From the sequence record NC_020851.1: a stretch of DNA of 64,000 nucleotides; one strand, given 5' to 3'. This document shows positions 8,355-51,009 of the stretch, piece by piece. Numbering within the stretch: the first letter of the stretch is position 1; each line of letters starts with the position of its first letter. Position numbers and translations under genes: made by a program. Below the pieces are notes generated by a model. It did not search any database. It had not been told where the DNA came from and saw only the letters and a program-made list of their open reading frames with translations.

Positions 8355-9984
8355 TTACTTTTTATTTAATGACTTTACAAAATTTCCAAGTTTCTTATCA
8401 TAATCTTTTGCTTTAGGTTTTTTCCCCAATTATTATCTTTTTGACTTGGAGGTTTTTTATAATCAACCCTTGCACCCATTCCTCCCCTTCTCAAATACTC
8501 GTCTTTTTACTGTCGTATGCCTCTTCATCAACCATTTCACCTTCCATATCATAAGACATCTTGAGACCCATTGCTCTCAACTTGTTCTTTGCAAGATTGA
8601 TTTTAGTAGGCATTGACCTTGGATCTTCTTCATTCTTTGCAGGTTTAGAGTTTTCATCCCAATATTCTCCACCAGCCTTACACTCTTCTCTCGTCTCGTC
8701 CTTATCACAGGCAGGACAATAACGCATCGTTCCTTCACCTTCGGCAATAGTGTCACCTTCCAATTCATGAGATGCTGCGATTTCGGCACCACCTCTAACT
8801 GCTCTCATTTTATTTTGAAGAATTCTCAACTTCATCATCTTATCTTTCTTACCCTGCTGTGCGGCAAGTTGCTCTTTCTTCTTCTCATCATCTTGCTGCT
8901 TCATAGAAGCATCCTGTTCGGCAATTCTTTGCGACTTCAGTAAATCAAGTTCGGCACGAATACTTTCACCAAGACTTGGATTAATCTTTACAGTATTCTT
9001 TCCCTTTTTCATTACATCAAGTTTCTTATCACCATTATCCTCCTTCTCGTAGATGACTTCCTCAACATACTTAGAACGATACTGTCCACCAGTTGTCTTA
9101 TGAGTATCAGCAAGTTCTGCTGCTCTCGAATCAGCATACTTTCTACTCTTTACTGGTTTACCAATCTTCTTCTCCTTTTTTCCATCAGGAGAACCCATTA
9201 CTTGATAAGGTGCTTCATCAATATACTCTTCTTTTGCCATTCTTTTTTTGGCAGATTTAGTCATATACTTTTCTTTATAAGAAGACTCTTTCTTATAAGT
9301 TTCTTTAGGAAATGCCGATCCCTTCACATAAGTTTCTTCTTTTGCCATCGACTTTTTAATGGCACGATCCTTCACACCAGCATACTCATGACGATCTGGT
9401 TCTTTAGTTCCGTCTCCGTCTTTATCTCCAACAGTATTTTTTCCTTTTGAAGAACCATATTTTTTCTCATGCTTCTCTCCATAATTTGGTTTTGGATCAC
9501 CCTTATAAGCATCATCAACTTCTTTACGACCAGTAATCTCAACAGAAGAAATATTCTTATTTGCTCTTAGTTCTGAGATCTTAGCACGATCTGCTTTTCT
9601 ATATGATGTATTACCAGTTTCTCTATCAGTTACTCTTACTACAAACTTTCTTTCTTCTGCCTCAGAAAAAACTCTAGAATAAACATAAGACGAAGAATCT
9701 TTTACATGTTCAGATACAGAGACAACACCAGTATCAATCTGTTCTTTAAATAATTTCTTCTTCACAATTGCCTTGACACCACCAGGAGCAGAAGAAGATC
9801 CAAGAAGTTGTCTATAAAGTTGCTGAACTTGTCCAGGACTCATACTAGATCCCGACGTACCTTTCATTTTTTGTCTTGCCTTATATTTAATATCGGAAGT
9901 GAGTTGAGATGCTTGTTGCTCAAGACTCGTATTTCCGGCGGCATGACCTCTACGAGGTCCTTCTTCAAAAATATGGTTACTCAT
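8355..9984 (-). CDS. Lys/Glu-rich modular hypothetical protein; C-terminus broken by two apparent homopolymer deletions
   Basis: Track ORF 8491-9984. Adding one A at 8504-8508 and one at 8418-8423 extends it to ...KSLNKK-stop at 8355. Confidence 0.75.
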
Positions 9985-10002: not shown

Positions 10003-11234
10003 TTACTTTTTTCTATATTTATTTATAAATTGTTTGCCCCATTCACTTCCCGGAACCATTTTCTCCACATACTTTCGATGAGCATCAGTTCCTATAAGTC
10101 TTTGATCAGCAGGAACACCAGAAGGTGCATTACTATTAGTTACTGCTTCGGATACATCTTTAATCCAGGACTTAAACATAATGTTATCTTCGGTGACACA
10201 AATCAGGTAGTTAGTTCCACGACGAATAATCTTACCAACCAATCCAGTGTTTAAATTTTCCACTACACTACCAACGGCATAAACTTTATTTTTGATAAAG
10301 TTCTCACGAAGATTTTTCCAATCAAACTTAGGAGCAATCTCCCACATGTTCCACCCTTCTTTGATTTGCATCGCAGCACGAAGAGTGTTATAAAGGTCTT
10401 TTGTTTGCTTACTATTCATCGTAGAAGGAATACCTTTACGGAATGCTGCAAAGTCTCCTTCTGCTGCTGCTTTTCTTTGCTTTGATGCAGACATTCCTTC
10501 TGTTCCTTCTGCATCAGGATCTCTATCTCCAGCAGAAAGAACCTCTACATTATCAAAGGCATAAAGTTTTCCATTATAGTCATTTGATAATCTCTCAAAT
10601 TCCTGAACTCTATCTCCACCACCAACAATTCTTACATTTGTATATCCATCATTATGTGCCTTCTTCAGAACATCAAAGATTGTTCTATTCGCAGGATCAT
10701 TTACAATCTTCTCACTATGAGTCGGATACATCTGTCTCATTACTGAAACCTTTGTATCAGGGTCTAATGGATTCTTTTTCTTATTCTGACTACGTGAAGG
10801 TACAATAATATAATCACCCTCATCAGAACTTGCGGCAACCTTATCTAATAGTTTTTCGTGTCCTGTTGTTGGTGGATTAAAACGACCAAATGTAACTGTT
10901 AGTGTTCCCTTTGTTTTTCTACTGGTGGTGGTCCTTCTTGTGTAGGAGCATCTTGTGCGGCAGGTTGTTCTGGTGCTGCTGCTTTTTGTTGAGTCGGTTC
11001 TTGTGCCGGTTGTTTTTCGTATGTTGTTTGTGAAAGTTTCTTTTCTTTATCGGTTGATGGAGGATCTTGTTTTCCTACTCTCTGTCTCTTATTATAAAAT
11101 TTTAGAGTTCCTTTTACCGTCTTCGCAACAAACTCACCATCTTTATACCATCCACCATGCCCGTCTCCTTCAAGACCTAATCTTGCGGCCTGTTGTGCTG
11201 CAGATTCAAATAGAAATTGGAAGAAACTCTTCAT
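10003..11234 (-). CDS. Cytidylyltransferase-like (class I nucleotidyltransferase, HxGH family) protein; one apparent homopolymer frameshift at about 10916
   Basis: Joining the frames gives ...EKTKGTLTVTFGRFNPPTTGHEKLL...VGGGDRV...SAGDRDPD...MSASKQR. Confidence 0.85.
10020..10027 (-). promoter_or_regulatory. T4-type late promoter TATAAATA
   Basis: Exact match upstream of the 9984 start. Confidence 0.75.
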
Positions 11235-11461: not shown

Positions 11462-12738
11462 CAATATCTTTTTGCACTAAGTCCTGGTTTTCCAAATACC
11501 TTAATAAAAGGTCCAGCAGTCGCAGATTCTTTTTTCATAGCATCAACCAGTACATGCATAAACATATCAAATTTTTTCTTCTTAGATATCATATAATATC
11601 GATGCAACCACTCCATTCCCCATAACTTAGCAGTTAATCTACTTCCAGCAGATCTACCAGTTTTTGTTCTTGCACCTCTTTGATCAGCAAGACATGCTTC
11701 ATTAAGTGCTGCTTCAAATCCCCTCTCAATTGGAGTAGTCCCTTCTTCATATTTTCCAGGTCTACCAAAATCTATTTTTTACCATCAATTGTAGCAGAAC
11801 TAAGAGTATTATATAATTTAATCCAATACTGTTTGTCAGCATCAGACCAAACTTGTCCAGCACTAGGAATATGTGGGTGTTTTGCTGGTGCAGGAACCTC
11901 AGATAAACCACATTTTTTACAAATGCATCCAACTTTTCGATAGATGCTTTACCAAGCATGGCACCTGTTCCTCCCGTAGGTTTTCCAGTATGTTGAGGTT
12001 TTTCTCTAGGTTGCTTTGCTTGAAATGTTCTTCCCTGTACATCAACTGACATCGCATCTCTACCAGCCCCACCCCTATCAACCATATTCCAAGAAATTTC
12101 TTGTGCAAATTTCCATTCATTCGCATTTGCATCCCATGCCAAATCACATGAAAAATTATCTGCAGTAAACTCATGAAGAGATCTTCTTTTTGCTTCTCTA
12201 GTCATAAGTTTAGAACTCATCTCAAAGGCGCCTCTTTCATTCTTACCAACTTTTTTAAGAGAAACTGGCATCAACGTTTTATCTCTAATATATTCTTCCA
12301 TCAAGGAATTCAAAGTATTTAAGTTTAATAGTTTATCACCAGTATCACACATCTCGATTATTCTTTTTTTATCTTTGACTCTTCTGATTTTTTTACGGCA
12401 ACAACATCCATGGGATTCCAACTATCAAGAGATCCAGTAATCCCACCTTTTTGTTGTGCGATTTTATTCAAGAAGTCCATCATACCACTCGCCTGATCTC
12501 TTGACCAAGACCAACCTGTCGTTGGAATACCTCTCGATATCATATAATTCATGAGACCAATAACCTGCTCATCATAACTTCTTCTCCACTCAGCATTTGC
12601 CTGAGGGTAAACCCCACTCTTACCAAATGCTTTCTTATCCAGATCAGAATATTGTTTATCGTTGAGATTAAATTTCTTATCACAGTGTTCTTTAAAGAAC
12701 AAAATAGAACAATCTTCTTGTTTCGCAGTGTTACTCAT
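11461..12738 (-). CDS. Hypothetical ~426-aa protein, possible PD-(D/E)xK-like nuclease; three apparent homopolymer frameshifts
   Basis: Fragments join after adding one A at about 12367, 11915 and 11778; motifs WNPMDVV, PVSLKK and C-terminal GPFIKVF; AATAAATA upstream at 12760-12767. Confidence 0.65.
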
Positions 12739-12773
12739 AACACATAATACTTTTTTAAGTATTTATTATGAAG

Positions 12774-12965
12774 TTATAATCCTTTGAGATAGTCTTTCTC
12801 TTTTTGATATGGAACTATCTCACCAGTATAATGTTTCCATCCTTCTTGAATATCGGGAACTAACCATTGGTCAACACGATAACAATATTTCCAGTTCACA
12901 GGTTGTATACAATTCATCACAACTACCGTCCAGAATGATATGAGATAGTTGAGAATTGTATACAT
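12774..12965 (-). CDS. Small hypothetical protein
   Basis: 63-aa ORF in operon. Confidence 0.7.
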   Translation of the reverse strand: MYTILNYLISFWTVVVMNCIQPVNWKYCYRVDQWLVPDIQEGWKHYTGEIVPYQKEKDYLKGL

Positions 12966-38512: not shown

Positions 38513-39868
38513 TCACATGAGGTTTTGAACCTTGACTCTTCTGTAGTAAGTGTTACTGTTGGTTTGGAGTCTTCCCAAACCTTCAGTGGTTCCTTCTGCG
38601 AAGGGGTTAGCAACCAAACCGTAACGGGTCTTGAATCCAATCTTAGGCTGGAAGGTGTTCTCTCCAACTGCACGAACCATCTGAAGAGGGACGTAAGGGC
38701 AATAGAACAGACCTGCGTCATAAGGTGAAGAACCTTTATAACCAGCAACGTAGTACTGAGCACCAGATGCGTTAGGGGAGTTTGCAGAATAAGGATCGAT
38801 ATAGACCTTATACTTACCAGCAAGTACACCTGCGAAGGTGTTACCAGTGTCATCAACATTCAGGTTTGCATTAAGTGCAGGGGTGTAATCAAGTACACCA
38901 GCCATTGTCAATGCGGAAGCAACGTCTGCGGAACACAGAATCATGTTGCCCTTTCCTCTACGAGTTTCTTGTGCGATTGCGTTTGCATCGCGCTCGATTT
39001 GGAAAATAAGACCTTTGAACTTCTCAACAGACCAACGACCGTTGGAGTCAACGTCTAAGTCGAAGGTGCCTTGAGTTGCAACATTCTGTTGAGCACCGGG
39101 TTTAGCAACCTGATAGATGGTTCTGATGACTTCTCTGTTGATTTCCGCAAGGATTTCAGTGGAGAGAATGTTGGCAAGTTCTGCCTCGGCATTCAAACCA
39201 TGAATAGCCTTGAGGTCTTGTGCCAGTTCCAGAGAATACTCTGCTTTCAGAGCACGGGACTTGGCAGTAACGGTGACTTTCTCAATCGAGAATGCCATCT
39301 CGTTGAAAGCTGCAGATGCGCTGCCTTCGAGACCTTCAGCACCGGCAGTCTCCATACCAGCGGATACATTATAAGTATCAGGGGGGGAACTGTTAAGAAG
39401 ACCAGGGTTGCTTCCACTCTGAGCAGCAGTAGTACCAACACCAACTGTACCAGCATAAGGAGTTTGTGGAAGGGTTCCTCCAACATTCTGACCAGAGAAT
39501 CTAGTATCTGCTTCGTCGAAGAGTGCTTCGGTTCCACTTTGATTCGTGTAACGTGAACGCATTGCGAAGATCAGTCCAGTAGGACCGTTCATCGGTTGAA
39601 CACCTGCGAGGTCATATGCGACCAGGTTAGGCATTGCGCGTCTGATCAATGAGATCAGAACGGGATCGAAGTTATCAATACCAGCTCCGGTGGAGTTGGT
39701 AGGTGCTTCAGAAAGGAATTCTCTTTCCTCTCTGATTGTTCTTTCTTGATTCTCCAGAAGAACTGCGGTAACCATTCTCTTATGAGCATCATTGATGCCT
39801 CCGAGACCCTCATGGTTGAGGATAGGTGCCCACTTCTCCTGAAGGTGTTCAGCATTGAAACCTTGCAT
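38513..39868 (-). CDS. gp23: Major capsid protein
   Basis: EKWAPIL, LIRRAMPNL, GVQPMNGPTGLIFAMRSRY, KSRALKAEYS, KIGFKTRYG. Confidence 0.98.
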   Translation of the reverse strand: MQGFNAEHLQEKWAPILNHEGLGGINDAHKRMVTAVLLENQERTIREEREFLSEAPTNSTGAGIDNFDPVLISLIRRAMPNLVAYDLAGVQPMNGPTGLIFAMRSRYTNQSGTEALFDEADTRFSGQNVGGTLPQTPYAGTVGVGTTAAQSGSNPGLLNSSPPDTYNVSAGMETAGAEGLEGSASAAFNEMAFSIEKVTVTAKSRALKAEYSLELAQDLKAIHGLNAEAELANILSTEILAEINREVIRTIYQVAKPGAQQNVATQGTFDLDVDSNGRWSVEKFKGLIFQIERDANAIAQETRRGKGNMILCSADVASALTMAGVLDYTPALNANLNVDDTGNTFAGVLAGKYKVYIDPYSANSPNASGAQYYVAGYKGSSPYDAGLFYCPYVPLQMVRAVGENTFQPKIGFKTRYGLVANPFAEGTTEGLGRLQTNSNTYYRRVKVQNLM

Positions 39869-41073: not shown

Positions 41074-41081
41074 TATTTATA
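41074..41081 (-). promoter_or_regulatory. T4-type late promoter TATAAATA
   Basis: Exact match upstream of gp22. Confidence 0.8.
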
Positions 41082-41083
41082 AT

Positions 41084-41737
41084 TTAAAGATTTGATAAGA
41101 ATTCGTTGAACAAGTTTAACTTATGTTCATCGAGAATTCTTTGATCAACAAGAGTATTAATTCTCTTCTGAGTTTTTTCTGCGAGTTGTTCACGAAGAAT
41201 TCCTCCTTCCCAAATCCACTCTTTTCCTTCCATAATTCCTGATACAAATGCATCAGGTGCAGAAGGATCGGCAACGATATCAGCAGCAGTTGCTAACATG
41301 AAATCTTCACCAACAACTTTGCATCCACCACGATCTTCTTTTAATGAACCAACACCACGAGAAGAAACTCCAAGCATGACACCTTCATCTAAAAGTGAAG
41401 ATGCAATTTTGCCCATAGGAGTATTGAGGATTTGTGCCTTACCTCTAAAATTACTACCCTCTTGAGTGAGTGAAGTAATCTTATGAGAAACACGGTCAAG
41501 ATTTACGGTAGGACCATCAGGATGACCAAGTTCTCCAAGAGCACGTCCCTTATTAACAAAAGTTTCACAATAACGATTTACTTCACGGGAAAGAGTATCC
41601 ATAGGATACATTCTTCCATTACGATTTTTAAGGTCTCCTTGTAAGAAAACTCCCTCAATGTATAGTTTTTGAGGTTCTCCTCTCTTACCTTCCTTAATAA
41701 TCTTTACGTTTGAAATTTCTTCTGTGATGAGTTTCAT
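41084..41737 (-). CDS. gp21: Prohead protease
   Basis: NRNGRMYP, ALGELGHP, GVSSRGVGS, DIVADPSAPDAF. Confidence 0.97.
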   Translation of the reverse strand: MKLITEEISNVKIIKEGKRGEPQKLYIEGVFLQGDLKNRNGRMYPMDTLSREVNRYCETFVNKGRALGELGHPDGPTVNLDRVSHKITSLTQEGSNFRGKAQILNTPMGKIASSLLDEGVMLGVSSRGVGSLKEDRGGCKVVGEDFMLATAADIVADPSAPDAFVSGIMEGKEWIWEGGILREQLAEKTQKRINTLVDQRILDEHKLNLFNEFLSNL

Positions 41738-49948: not shown

Positions 49949-50704
49949 TTATTCAGTTTGATTTTGTATAAGTAAAATGCAAAAAGTTGCTGCACATTTC
50001 ATATTATTTGTGTCAGAATATGCTCTGATTTCACAATCACTTTTTTCTTCAACTTTTAATGGAAACTTGTAATTTCTTTCAATATCGTTTTGATTTGTAT
50101 GTGCAACATCATGAGATCTCCATGTTCCATTATCATTATGACCTCTACATACTAGAAAAACATCACCGTCAGATTTTGCAGTCGATATATCCCATTGATA
50201 AATGAAACCTGTATAACCTGCAGGAACAGTATATATGGACATAAATGTCTGACCCAATCCTGTTGAAGTTGGAGATCCTACAGTACGAATTTGTGCTAAT
50301 GTTGTTGCACCAGAAGCAATTGAAATTGTTCCTTCATTTGTTCCACTAGAACCAGAACTTGCAACAAAAGCACGAAATACTCTAAAAAATTCTACACTAC
50401 CAGCAGAACCACCAACGGTTAAGGTTTCTGATACTTGATTATAGTTTGCGTCTAATCCCTCGACAGTTACAGTTCTTGCACCGGTTCCTGCTGCCGCATC
50501 ATCACCATCAGTGCTAGTGACTGTTACTACTGCTGCTGCTGTGAGATATGTATATAATCCACCACCATCCCAGATAGTTTCCATGGAACCATCAATATCA
50601 AGATTTTCTCCAAACTTGATGATATGAAAAGCACCACGAACTTTACCACGAGAAACATTCAATTCCCATGCTTCGTCCCATAAGTAATTTTTAAATCCCA
50701 TCAA
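49949..50704 (-). CDS. Hypothetical Gly/Thr-rich protein (probable virion protein)
   Basis: KFGEN.DID...ETIWD.GG.Y...GTGARTV.VEGLD.NY. Confidence 0.75.
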   Translation of the reverse strand: MMGFKNYLWDEAWELNVSRGKVRGAFHIIKFGENLDIDGSMETIWDGGGLYTYLTAAAVVTVTSTDGDDAAAGTGARTVTVEGLDANYNQVSETLTVGGSAGSVEFFRVFRAFVASSGSSGTNEGTISIASGATTLAQIRTVGSPTSTGLGQTFMSIYTVPAGYTGFIYQWDISTAKSDGDVFLVCRGHNDNGTWRSHDVAHTNQNDIERNYKFPLKVEEKSDCEIRAYSDTNNMKCAATFCILLIQNQTE

Positions 50705-51009
50705 TCACTCCACGATAATCTTTCAGGTTGATACCTTTGAGAATTTTTAATTCTTGAAGTATTTACCTCACCAGGATAAACATTATGAACCATTGCTCCG
50801 GGATATTCTCCTTGAATTTGCTCTGCAAGTTCTTTCTTCGAAAGTATTTTACCTTCTACTTCCAAACGATACATCTTACCTTCCCACACAATATCTGCAG
50901 AATAAGTTTCCTGCTGTTGTTGTGGTTCGGAACCTCCTACATTTAGAGTTCCATTAAAATCACCATTAATAGTGATGCTTTCTGAGAGAAATTGTTTGAA
51001 GTTTTTCAT
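50701..51009 (-). CDS. Hypothetical protein with a capsid-targeting-like N-terminus
   Basis: Begins MKNFKQFLSES. Confidence 0.75.
   Translation of the reverse strand: MKNFKQFLSESITINGDFNGTLNVGGSEPQQQQETYSADIVWEGKMYRLEVEGKILSKKELAEQIQGEYPGAMVHNVYPGEVNTSRIKNSQRYQPERLSWSD

Follow-up and report, generated by a model that had tools for sequence, protein, structure and literature searches.

The DNA considered here (the window) is a stretch of 64,000 nucleotides which is identical (100%) to part of the genome of the Synechococcus phage S-SKS1 (NC_020851/HQ633071), a window position being the record position minus 62000, and whose minus strand carries the full T4-type head and tail set, including gp21, gp22, gp23, portal, sheath, tube, and terminase. 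On this strand, at 10003–11234, lies the gene of an enzyme of the HxGH nucleotidyltransferase family that begins with a leader of ten residues, resembling the capsid-targeting sequence of the internal proteins of T4, and on balance we favor the view that this leader takes the enzyme into the head of the phage.

As deposited, 10003–11234 is read in two frames and not as a single open reading frame (ORF): the first runs from 11234 to 10899, giving 111 amino acids (aa) with a TAA stop at 10899–10901 (table 11), and the catalytic core follows in the −1 frame, whose open stretch spans 10003–11046 and offers no ATG, GTG or TTG before a Met at 10740. The cause is a run of five T at 10914–10918 (A5 on the coding strand, GAAAAAC), one base short in the deposit, which produces an apparent −1 frameshift. 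In Marine virus AG-345-L05, the closest isolate-like relative, the sequence is GAAAAAAC, with A6, and the gene is one uninterrupted ORF of 413 aa; metagenomic homologs number more than 8000, with 83–97% identity and 396–442 aa, the junction reads VEKTKGTLT in all six of those inspected (P0001–P0003, P0008, P0013, P0100), and one in-frame homolog sits on a 204-kb S-SKS1-like contig. Two public runs from a sample that may be the source of S-SKS1 were also compared: the additional base is present in the contig of the deeper run X2 (depth 73), the shallow run X1 (depth 11) agrees with the deposit, and the relatives in a seawater metagenome (X3) and a metatranscriptome (X8) have one more T behind 10913. 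Because the deeper run and all the relatives carry A6, the split is an assembly or homopolymer error in the record, and the true product has 410 aa, of which the first frame contributes 107 and the second 303. The reference record of S-SKS1 therefore conceals a core gene behind a frame error, which has left this copy unannotated, the GenBank annotation jumping over the locus tag SWZG_00093.

The first ten codons (11205–11234, minus strand) encode MKSFFQFLFE and end in a gp21-type site, L-F-E|S. The internal proteins IPI, IPII and IPIII of T4, and also Alt, are packaged via a capsid-targeting sequence and trimmed by gp21, and in the T4 record (NC_000866) ipII and ipIII both start MKTYQEFIAE|A, ipI starting MKTFKEF and having a propeptide that ends ITE|A. 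T4 gp23 is cut after Glu65, and the site FLTE65|A66 aligns with EFLSE|A, the end of the propeptide, after Glu54, in the S-SKS1 major capsid protein gp23 (38513–39868, minus strand; annotated, PF07068 with 499 bits). The leader of the enzyme fits both patterns. The presumed processing enzyme, an annotated gp21-type prohead protease, is encoded at 41084–41737 (minus strand; PF03420, 120 bits), and the gp22 scaffold is annotated in S-SKS1, so that the gp21/gp22/gp23 set is complete. Only two of the 270 S-SKS1 ORFs begin with the strict leader pattern, about 0.003 being expected by a rough estimate from composition which was not computed by a tool, and the N-terminal leader is thus far above chance.

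The distribution of the leader across the enzyme family points in the same direction. A search of 1.84 billion cluster representatives gave 4285 related clusters, and among the best 150, which were examined, 133 have both an initial Met and the core motif; these representatives are clustered below 50% identity. By the criterion of a basic/aromatic start followed by hydrophobic-x-Glu within the first 16 residues, the leader motif is present in 109 of the 133, compared with 61 of the 1239 ORFs taken from five phage genomes as background, and in the 109 its Glu is followed by Ala 42 times and by Ser 14 times. Close metagenomic homologs keep it, as do the orthologs detected in virions, S-SM1 (MKKFSAFLNE|A) and S-SZBM1 (MRFRQFIIE|A), and further P-TIM40 (MRFLDFIKE|A), P-TIM68 and S-CREM1. 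What comes after the leader is wholly different: another N-terminal domain in S-SM1, only a short linker in S-SZBM1 and P-TIM40. The leader stands at the N-terminus of the polypeptide whether the core starts about 4, about 100 or 300–520 residues further on, solved homologs begin to align only at the first strand (model residue 13–15), and it is absent altogether from the versions in P-HM2 and in two jumbo phages, 121Q and PA5oct. Because its position is constant, because the solved homologs align after it and because these three versions do without it, the leader is an add-on at the start of the polypeptide, outside the enzyme fold.

Part of what a sequence-only reading of this DNA had proposed for the locus is supported by these comparisons. 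It had taken 10003–11234 for one enzyme, which is true of the gene, a single ORF of 410 aa, but not of the deposited sequence, whose break it had read through. All of the motifs it listed are present on the minus strand, namely the leader, the Pro/Ala/Gln linker, FGRFNPPTTGHEK, GGGDR, MSASKQR, IKE|G, LRE|N, and VSE|A; the likeness of the leader to IPII/IPIII was borne out by the T4 record, that to the phage's own gp23 site by the alignment of EFLSE|A with FLTE|A, and the conservation in orthologs on which it had made its proposal depend is seen in the 109 of 133 representatives. Its further (I/L/V)-x-E sites do exist, but they carry no weight, the enzyme having seven internal sites of this kind where about four are expected, which is the level of chance.

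The same leader heads other proteins. SWZG_00151, an unrelated ORF of 102 aa between the small and large terminase genes (50701–51009, minus strand; phrog_1742), starts MKNFKQFLSE|S; its S-SZBM1 homolog keeps the leader, and a further S-SZBM1 ORF, of 165 aa, starts MKTFKQYITE|A. AG-345-L05 has two unrelated leader-bearing ORFs, and in the OM43 myophage Melnitz (Methylophilales phage) genes 15–18 (L063 290–4953) have four consecutive leader-like starts, MQGFKTFLSE|A, MLTLINFSKYITE|D, MKKFSELTSELIE|R, and MKKFSEIIE|A, the version of the enzyme being the last. To judge by these N-termini, the four genes may be a block of capsid-targeted cargo.

Behind the leader the enzyme is modular. Residues 11–50 (11085–11204, minus strand, as for all the parts that follow) would form a small, clade-specific N-terminal domain of a helix and three strands with a GDGHGGWY motif, with a predicted local distance difference test (pLDDT) of 85–89 in the AlphaFold (AF2) model, which was built from an alignment of 60 sequences; this domain has a weak match to the N-terminus of phrog_3561 and is missing from S-SZBM1, P-TIM40, and the short-leader members of the family. 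It is followed by a disordered linker rich in Pro, Ala, Gln, and Glu (residues ~51–106, 10919–11084, and 52–108 in the model; pLDDT 37–59), whose length differs between orthologs, and by the HxGH-type nucleotidyltransferase core (residues 110–290, 10369–10908; pLDDT above 90), supported by PF01467 and by fold matches, with the motifs FGRFNPPTTGH, FGRFNPPTTGHEK, GGGDR, SAGDRDPD, and MSASKQR. Strands at residues 325–364 (10144–10272; pLDDT ~90) form a small beta-barrel of the KOW/Tudor/SH3 type, which in the VIA structure search matches NusG KOW with Z 7.8 and a root-mean-square deviation of 1.3, Tudor domains being matched too, and phrog_4808 matches the enzyme over residues 308–363; a basic tail of low confidence in the model, with the stop codon, completes the translation (10003–10143). 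The leader itself has a pLDDT of 51 in the S-SKS1 model and of 75 in the other model, where it is a helix at residues 4–12.

The enzyme is T4-GC190, an HxGH-family nucleotidyltransferase: PF01467 (CTP_transf_like) matches with 35 bits against a cut-off of 21, TTGH and MSASKQR being present, PHROG 395 “cytidyltransferase” (phrog_395) matches with E 2.5e-108, and tblastn finds 565 phage records, nearly all of them T4-like cyanophages and mostly annotated “cytitidyltransferase.” T4-GC190 appears in the list of cyanophage core genes common to 16/16 of the genomes compared, three of the 16 having short versions of 552–570 nt (Sullivan et al., 2010; PMC3037559). Foldseek places PPAT, NadM, NadD, and archaeal NMNAT as the neighbors of the core (TM ~0.65–0.70 on the target), and the VIA search, run with the model of a shorter family member, gives Z 10–13 for adenylyltransferases of nicotinamide mononucleotide or nicotinic acid mononucleotide (NMN/NaMN), with one PPAT among these at Z 12.0, then cytidylyltransferases at Z 8–9.6, with TagD at Z 9.0 over 110 aligned residues. 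In the PDB sequences phmmer with the single protein found nothing, and a profile found only weak matches, to MJ0951, an archaeal NMNAT, and an NMNAT (E 0.01–0.7). The NCBIfam equivalogs all score 12–26 bits against cut-offs of 103–341: for NMNAT, TIGR01526 gives 20 against 341, TIGR00482 20 against 112, and TIGR01527 12–19 against 181, and for PPAT, TIGR01510 gives 17 against 103; TagD had no model hit in this search, its structural match also lying below those of the adenylyltransferases. Since no equivalog comes near its cut-off, the enzyme is an orphan branch of the HxGH superfamily, most like an adenylyltransferase to judge by the models, and the name “cytidylyltransferase” is probably a misnomer. 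It has already been called an NMNAT homolog in the S-CREM2 (PMC10665884) and S-SCSM1 (PMC9602691) papers, and it may work like an NMNAT, though its scores do not place it in that family. The assignment to the HxGH family made from the letters alone thus agrees with PF01467, the motifs, and the fold; as to the NMNAT/PPAT-like chemistry suggested with it, the fold leans to NMNAT but no equivalog model is matched, and the comparison with NMNAT, PPAT, and TagD that had been called for yields the order just described.

Many marine homologs are 600–1100 aa long, with leader and HxGH core N-terminal and long extensions after them (P0181 = L060 904–3912; P0154; P0258 = L061 4969–8301), of which one contains a glucosaminidase (peptidoglycan hydrolase) domain and another DUF5824. 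In P-HM2, genes 163 and 164 (L066 692–2425) comprise a leaderless core gene of 183 aa and the KOW-like barrel in a separate gene.

Mass spectrometry of purified virions has identified orthologs of the enzyme in at least five cyanophages. T4-GC190 had 25 peptide counts in S-SM1 virions, against 5–6 for gp14 and gp53 (Sullivan et al., 2010; PMC3037559), an ortholog is among the 30 proteins of S-SZBM1 virions purified in cesium chloride (CsCl) gradients (PMC9146016), another was found in S-CREM2 virions (PMC10665884), and another, as “NMNAT,” in those of S-SCSM1, where a detection in S-CBWM1 is cited as well (PMC9602691). Transport of the enzyme into the host inside the phage particle has been suggested before (PMC3037559, PMC10665884, PMC9602691). 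In the available parts of the cyanophage papers, an N-terminal targeting or cleavage signal is not mentioned (PMC3037559, PMC9146016, PMC9602691, PMC10665884), and the literature that uses the phrase “capsid targeting sequence” includes no cyanophage paper among the matches listed. Thus, the packaged enzyme is already known, and its link to a T4-style leader for targeting and cleavage appears to be new. The new point, a modular leader of the T4 type, with predicted capsid targeting and gp21 cleavage, widespread in marine T4-like phages, is well supported by the comparisons of N-termini.

The mechanism that we propose would be as follows. While the prohead assembles, the leader would most likely act as a T4-like capsid-targeting sequence and bring the enzyme into the scaffold core; cleavage by the gp21-type protease after Glu10 (L-F-E|S) would next remove the leader; and the trimmed enzyme would remain in the head once this is filled with DNA, and would probably pass into the cell together with that DNA. 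Within the cell, it would carry out the ATP-dependent transfer of a nucleotidyl group to a small phosphorylated molecule, the leading candidate being the conversion of NMN or NaMN to nicotinamide adenine dinucleotide (NAD), and a role against NAD-depleting defense is speculation. Taken as a whole, this sequence of events seems to us rather probable; within it, the carriage of the enzyme in the virion is likely, and the specific NMNAT chemistry is a tentative assignment about which we have more doubt than belief.

Several observations weigh against this mechanism. No virion proteome of S-SKS1 was found in the literature, nor, for any ortholog, an N-terminal or semi-tryptic peptide showing cleavage, and T4-GC190 went undetected in the virion proteomes of S-PM2 and Syn9 (PMC3037559). 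The authors of two of the papers caution that a soluble enzyme present in large amounts could accompany the particles through CsCl purification (PMC10665884, PMC9602691), and the small leader-bearing ORFs of S-SZBM1 are not among the 30 virion proteins in the table of PMC9146016. A scan of T4 for the leader recovers ipI, ipII, and ipIII and also gp61.1 (NC_000866 18966–19130, minus strand), a hypothetical protein of 54 aa in the early primase region whose start, MKTFKEFIKE|D, is a near-perfect leader; given this protein in an early-gene region, the leader motif alone is no proof of packaging. There is no clear late promoter before the enzyme gene, only GATAAATA at −83, and the orthologs are inconsistent in this respect. 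The only paper found to bring together late genes and a cytidylyltransferase names a “glycerol-3-phosphate cytidylyltransferase,” with no apparent tie to this gene. Finally, as regards the substrate, the equivalog scores are all far below cut-off, and in fold PPAT and NMNAT are tied.

Some of these points would be accommodated if the leader were a conserved amphipathic N-terminal helix, serving, for instance, in oligomerization, regulation or membrane contact of an ordinary intracellular auxiliary metabolic enzyme, whose detection in virions would then be carry-over. The helix does lie only ~4 residues before the first strand in most members of the family, with moderate confidence (pLDDT 75, helix 4–12), the caveat of contamination comes from the authors of two of the proteomics papers (PMC10665884, PMC9602691), the enzyme was not seen in S-PM2 and Syn9, and gp61.1 makes it plain that leader-like N-termini occur outside the known virion proteins. 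However, a helix belonging to the enzyme would hardly be expected to stay N-terminal with the core 100–520 aa away, to head unrelated proteins of the same genomes, to be dispensed with in the solved homologs and in the 121Q, PA5oct, and P-HM2 versions, and to end in hydrophobic-x-Glu|Ala/Ser, as the gp23 maturation site does; and five independent virion proteomes contain the enzyme, that of S-SM1 with its 25 peptide counts well above the 5–6 of gp14 and gp53. For these reasons we think this explanation unlikely.

It could also be that the leader does package the protein, but that the latter works inside the head, for instance as a core or DNA-associated assembly factor by way of its KOW-like barrel, and is not injected, its enzyme activity being perhaps secondary. 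The barrel of KOW/Tudor type and the basic tail would suit such a role, as would the presence of the gene in 16/16 of the cyanomyovirus genomes compared, which is to be expected of an assembly component (PMC3037559), and the fusion of some relatives to long extensions, including a glucosaminidase. Against this, the catalytic motifs are nearly invariant over thousands of homologs, which argues for selection on catalysis. In T4, moreover, the proteins that bear a capsid-targeting sequence are injected, and we hold such a role confined to the head to be quite improbable. That the frame break is real, whether as a pseudogene or as a slippage site, programmed −1 or transcriptional, in the A-run that yields a leader product of 111 aa beside the full-length one, has in its favor the A5 of the deposit and of the X1 contig, a location in a homopolymer where slippage is possible and the missing annotation, but it is scarcely credible in view of the A6 in the deeper run (depth 73) of the same sample, the in-frame state of all relatives, the near-identical 204-kb contig included, the zero-frame codons GAA AAA CAA, which form no X XXY YYZ heptamer, and the skipping of _00096 also, with overlapping ORFs there, so that the record may hold more such errors; programmed −1 frameshifting in particular was rejected as very unlikely on the strength of the reads and the in-frame relatives.

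The shallow run X1 is, in addition, one base short of the window at ~10007, in the T-run just after the stop codon of the enzyme, a further sign of homopolymer noise in the data from the source sample. The second unannotated stretch, where the locus tag SWZG_00096 is skipped in GenBank, lies at 11616–12774 (minus strand); ORFs 12358–12738 and 11762–12421 overlap there in different frames, the second ending in nonsense-looking sequence, and one or more further homopolymer frame errors are probably present.

As to the surroundings of the gene, its beginning shares bases with the stop codon that ends the ORF upstream (TAATG), and on its downstream side a perfect T4-type late-promoter motif, TATAAATA (10020–10027, minus strand), stands 43 nt upstream of the next gene, which starts at 9984. 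This gene, SWZG_00092 (8491–9984, minus strand; ORF and annotation), encodes a highly charged protein of 497 aa, and NATAAATA is found at −32 to −43 before its positional counterpart in 4/4 genomes, S-SKS1 included. In S-SZBM1 the gene at the corresponding position, 139, encodes a protein of the virion (PMC9146016). Homology of SWZG_00092 to S-SZBM1_139 or S-SM1_191 was considered and rejected, there being no BLASTP similarity, and the features in common are only the position and the late-promoter motif. Exact copies of TATAAATA occur at eight sites of the window (1706, 8109, 10020, 20033, 21255, 41074, 43519, and 56747), all on the minus (coding) strand, the one at 41074–41081 falling in the gap between gp21 and gp22; their placement would fit T4-type late promoters, the total count not being above chance. 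A scan for sigma-70 promoters and terminators gave background level only, and Pfam found nothing for the N-terminal domain, the neighboring genes or SWZG_00151.

In many relatives T4-GC71 lies directly upstream of the enzyme (L017 1309–2283 in S-SM1; L018 1209–2402 in S-SZBM1; L067 in S-PM2; L063 1359–2615 in Melnitz; L061 631–1860). Its motifs NTHLEHLED and KWDG are like those of ligases or capping-enzyme nucleotidyltransferases, and the L061 copy is Pfam DUF6267; in S-PM2 it forms an in-frame fusion with the HxGH core, and in Melnitz and in L061 its start is leader-like. The S-SKS1 homolog lies elsewhere, at 145632–146522 of the record.

A wider reading can be entertained, in which the leader MKxFxxF(L/I)xE would be a general cargo tag of the marine T4-like phages (of cyanobacteria, SAR11, and OM43), by which varied enzymes would enter the capsid and be delivered along with the DNA. 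The cargo may in this case comprise the NMNAT-like adenylyltransferase, its long fusions, of which some contain a peptidoglycan hydrolase domain, the ligase-like T4-GC71/DUF6267, and several small proteins; and the adenylyltransferase, which often lies next to the ligase-like protein or is fused with it, may be an injected module for the first minutes of infection, restoring NAD or an adenylylated cofactor against defenses that deplete NAD or damage nucleic acids. With all of these parts taken jointly, the injected module included, such a reading must be considered rather unlikely.

T4-like cyanophages kill a large share of the main photosynthetic bacteria of the ocean, and one of their core genes has repeatedly been found in virions without an explanation of how its product enters them, for which a T4-style leader offers a concrete mechanism. 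The model predicts the mature N-terminus, Ser11 in S-SKS1 and Ala11 in S-SM1; the leader also marks further candidate packaged proteins in the genomes of cyanophages, pelagiphages, and OM43 phages, and it suggests a tag for putting foreign proteins into cyanophage capsids.

Compared with the systems already known, the enzyme shares with the internal proteins of T4 a leader of ten residues, M-K-x-(F/Y)-x-x-F-(I/L)-x-E, followed by Ala or Ser, and S-SKS1 shares with T4 the gp21, gp22, and gp23 homologs and a gp23 maturation site that can be aligned; as with those internal proteins, one leader heads unrelated proteins, and orthologs of the enzyme are found in virions. Unlike them, the cargo is an HxGH nucleotidyltransferase, neither an ADP-ribosyltransferase nor one of the small basic internal proteins, the similarity is confined to the leader, and targeting, cleavage, and injection are predicted. 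With the virion protein T4-GC190, known as “cytitidyltransferase” or “NMNAT-like,” the gene belongs to the same family, the S-SKS1 copy having been left unannotated through the frame error. With NadM, NadR, NadD, archaeal NMNAT, and PPAT (CoaD), it shares the Rossmann-like fold and motifs of the GRFxPxxxGH and SxSxxR type; its SxQ....NPL resembles the SAQ....NPF of archaeal NMNAT, and Thr replaces the first His of HxGH, as it does in PPAT, but the identity to NMNAT and PPAT is only 11–19%, and the enzyme adds the leader, the N-terminal domain, and the KOW-like barrel. TagD (glycerol-3-phosphate cytidylyltransferase), from which the usual annotation derives, is likewise a member of Pfam PF01467, but gave no model hit, and the structural match of the enzyme to it (Z 9.0, 110 residues) is weaker than to the adenylyltransferases.

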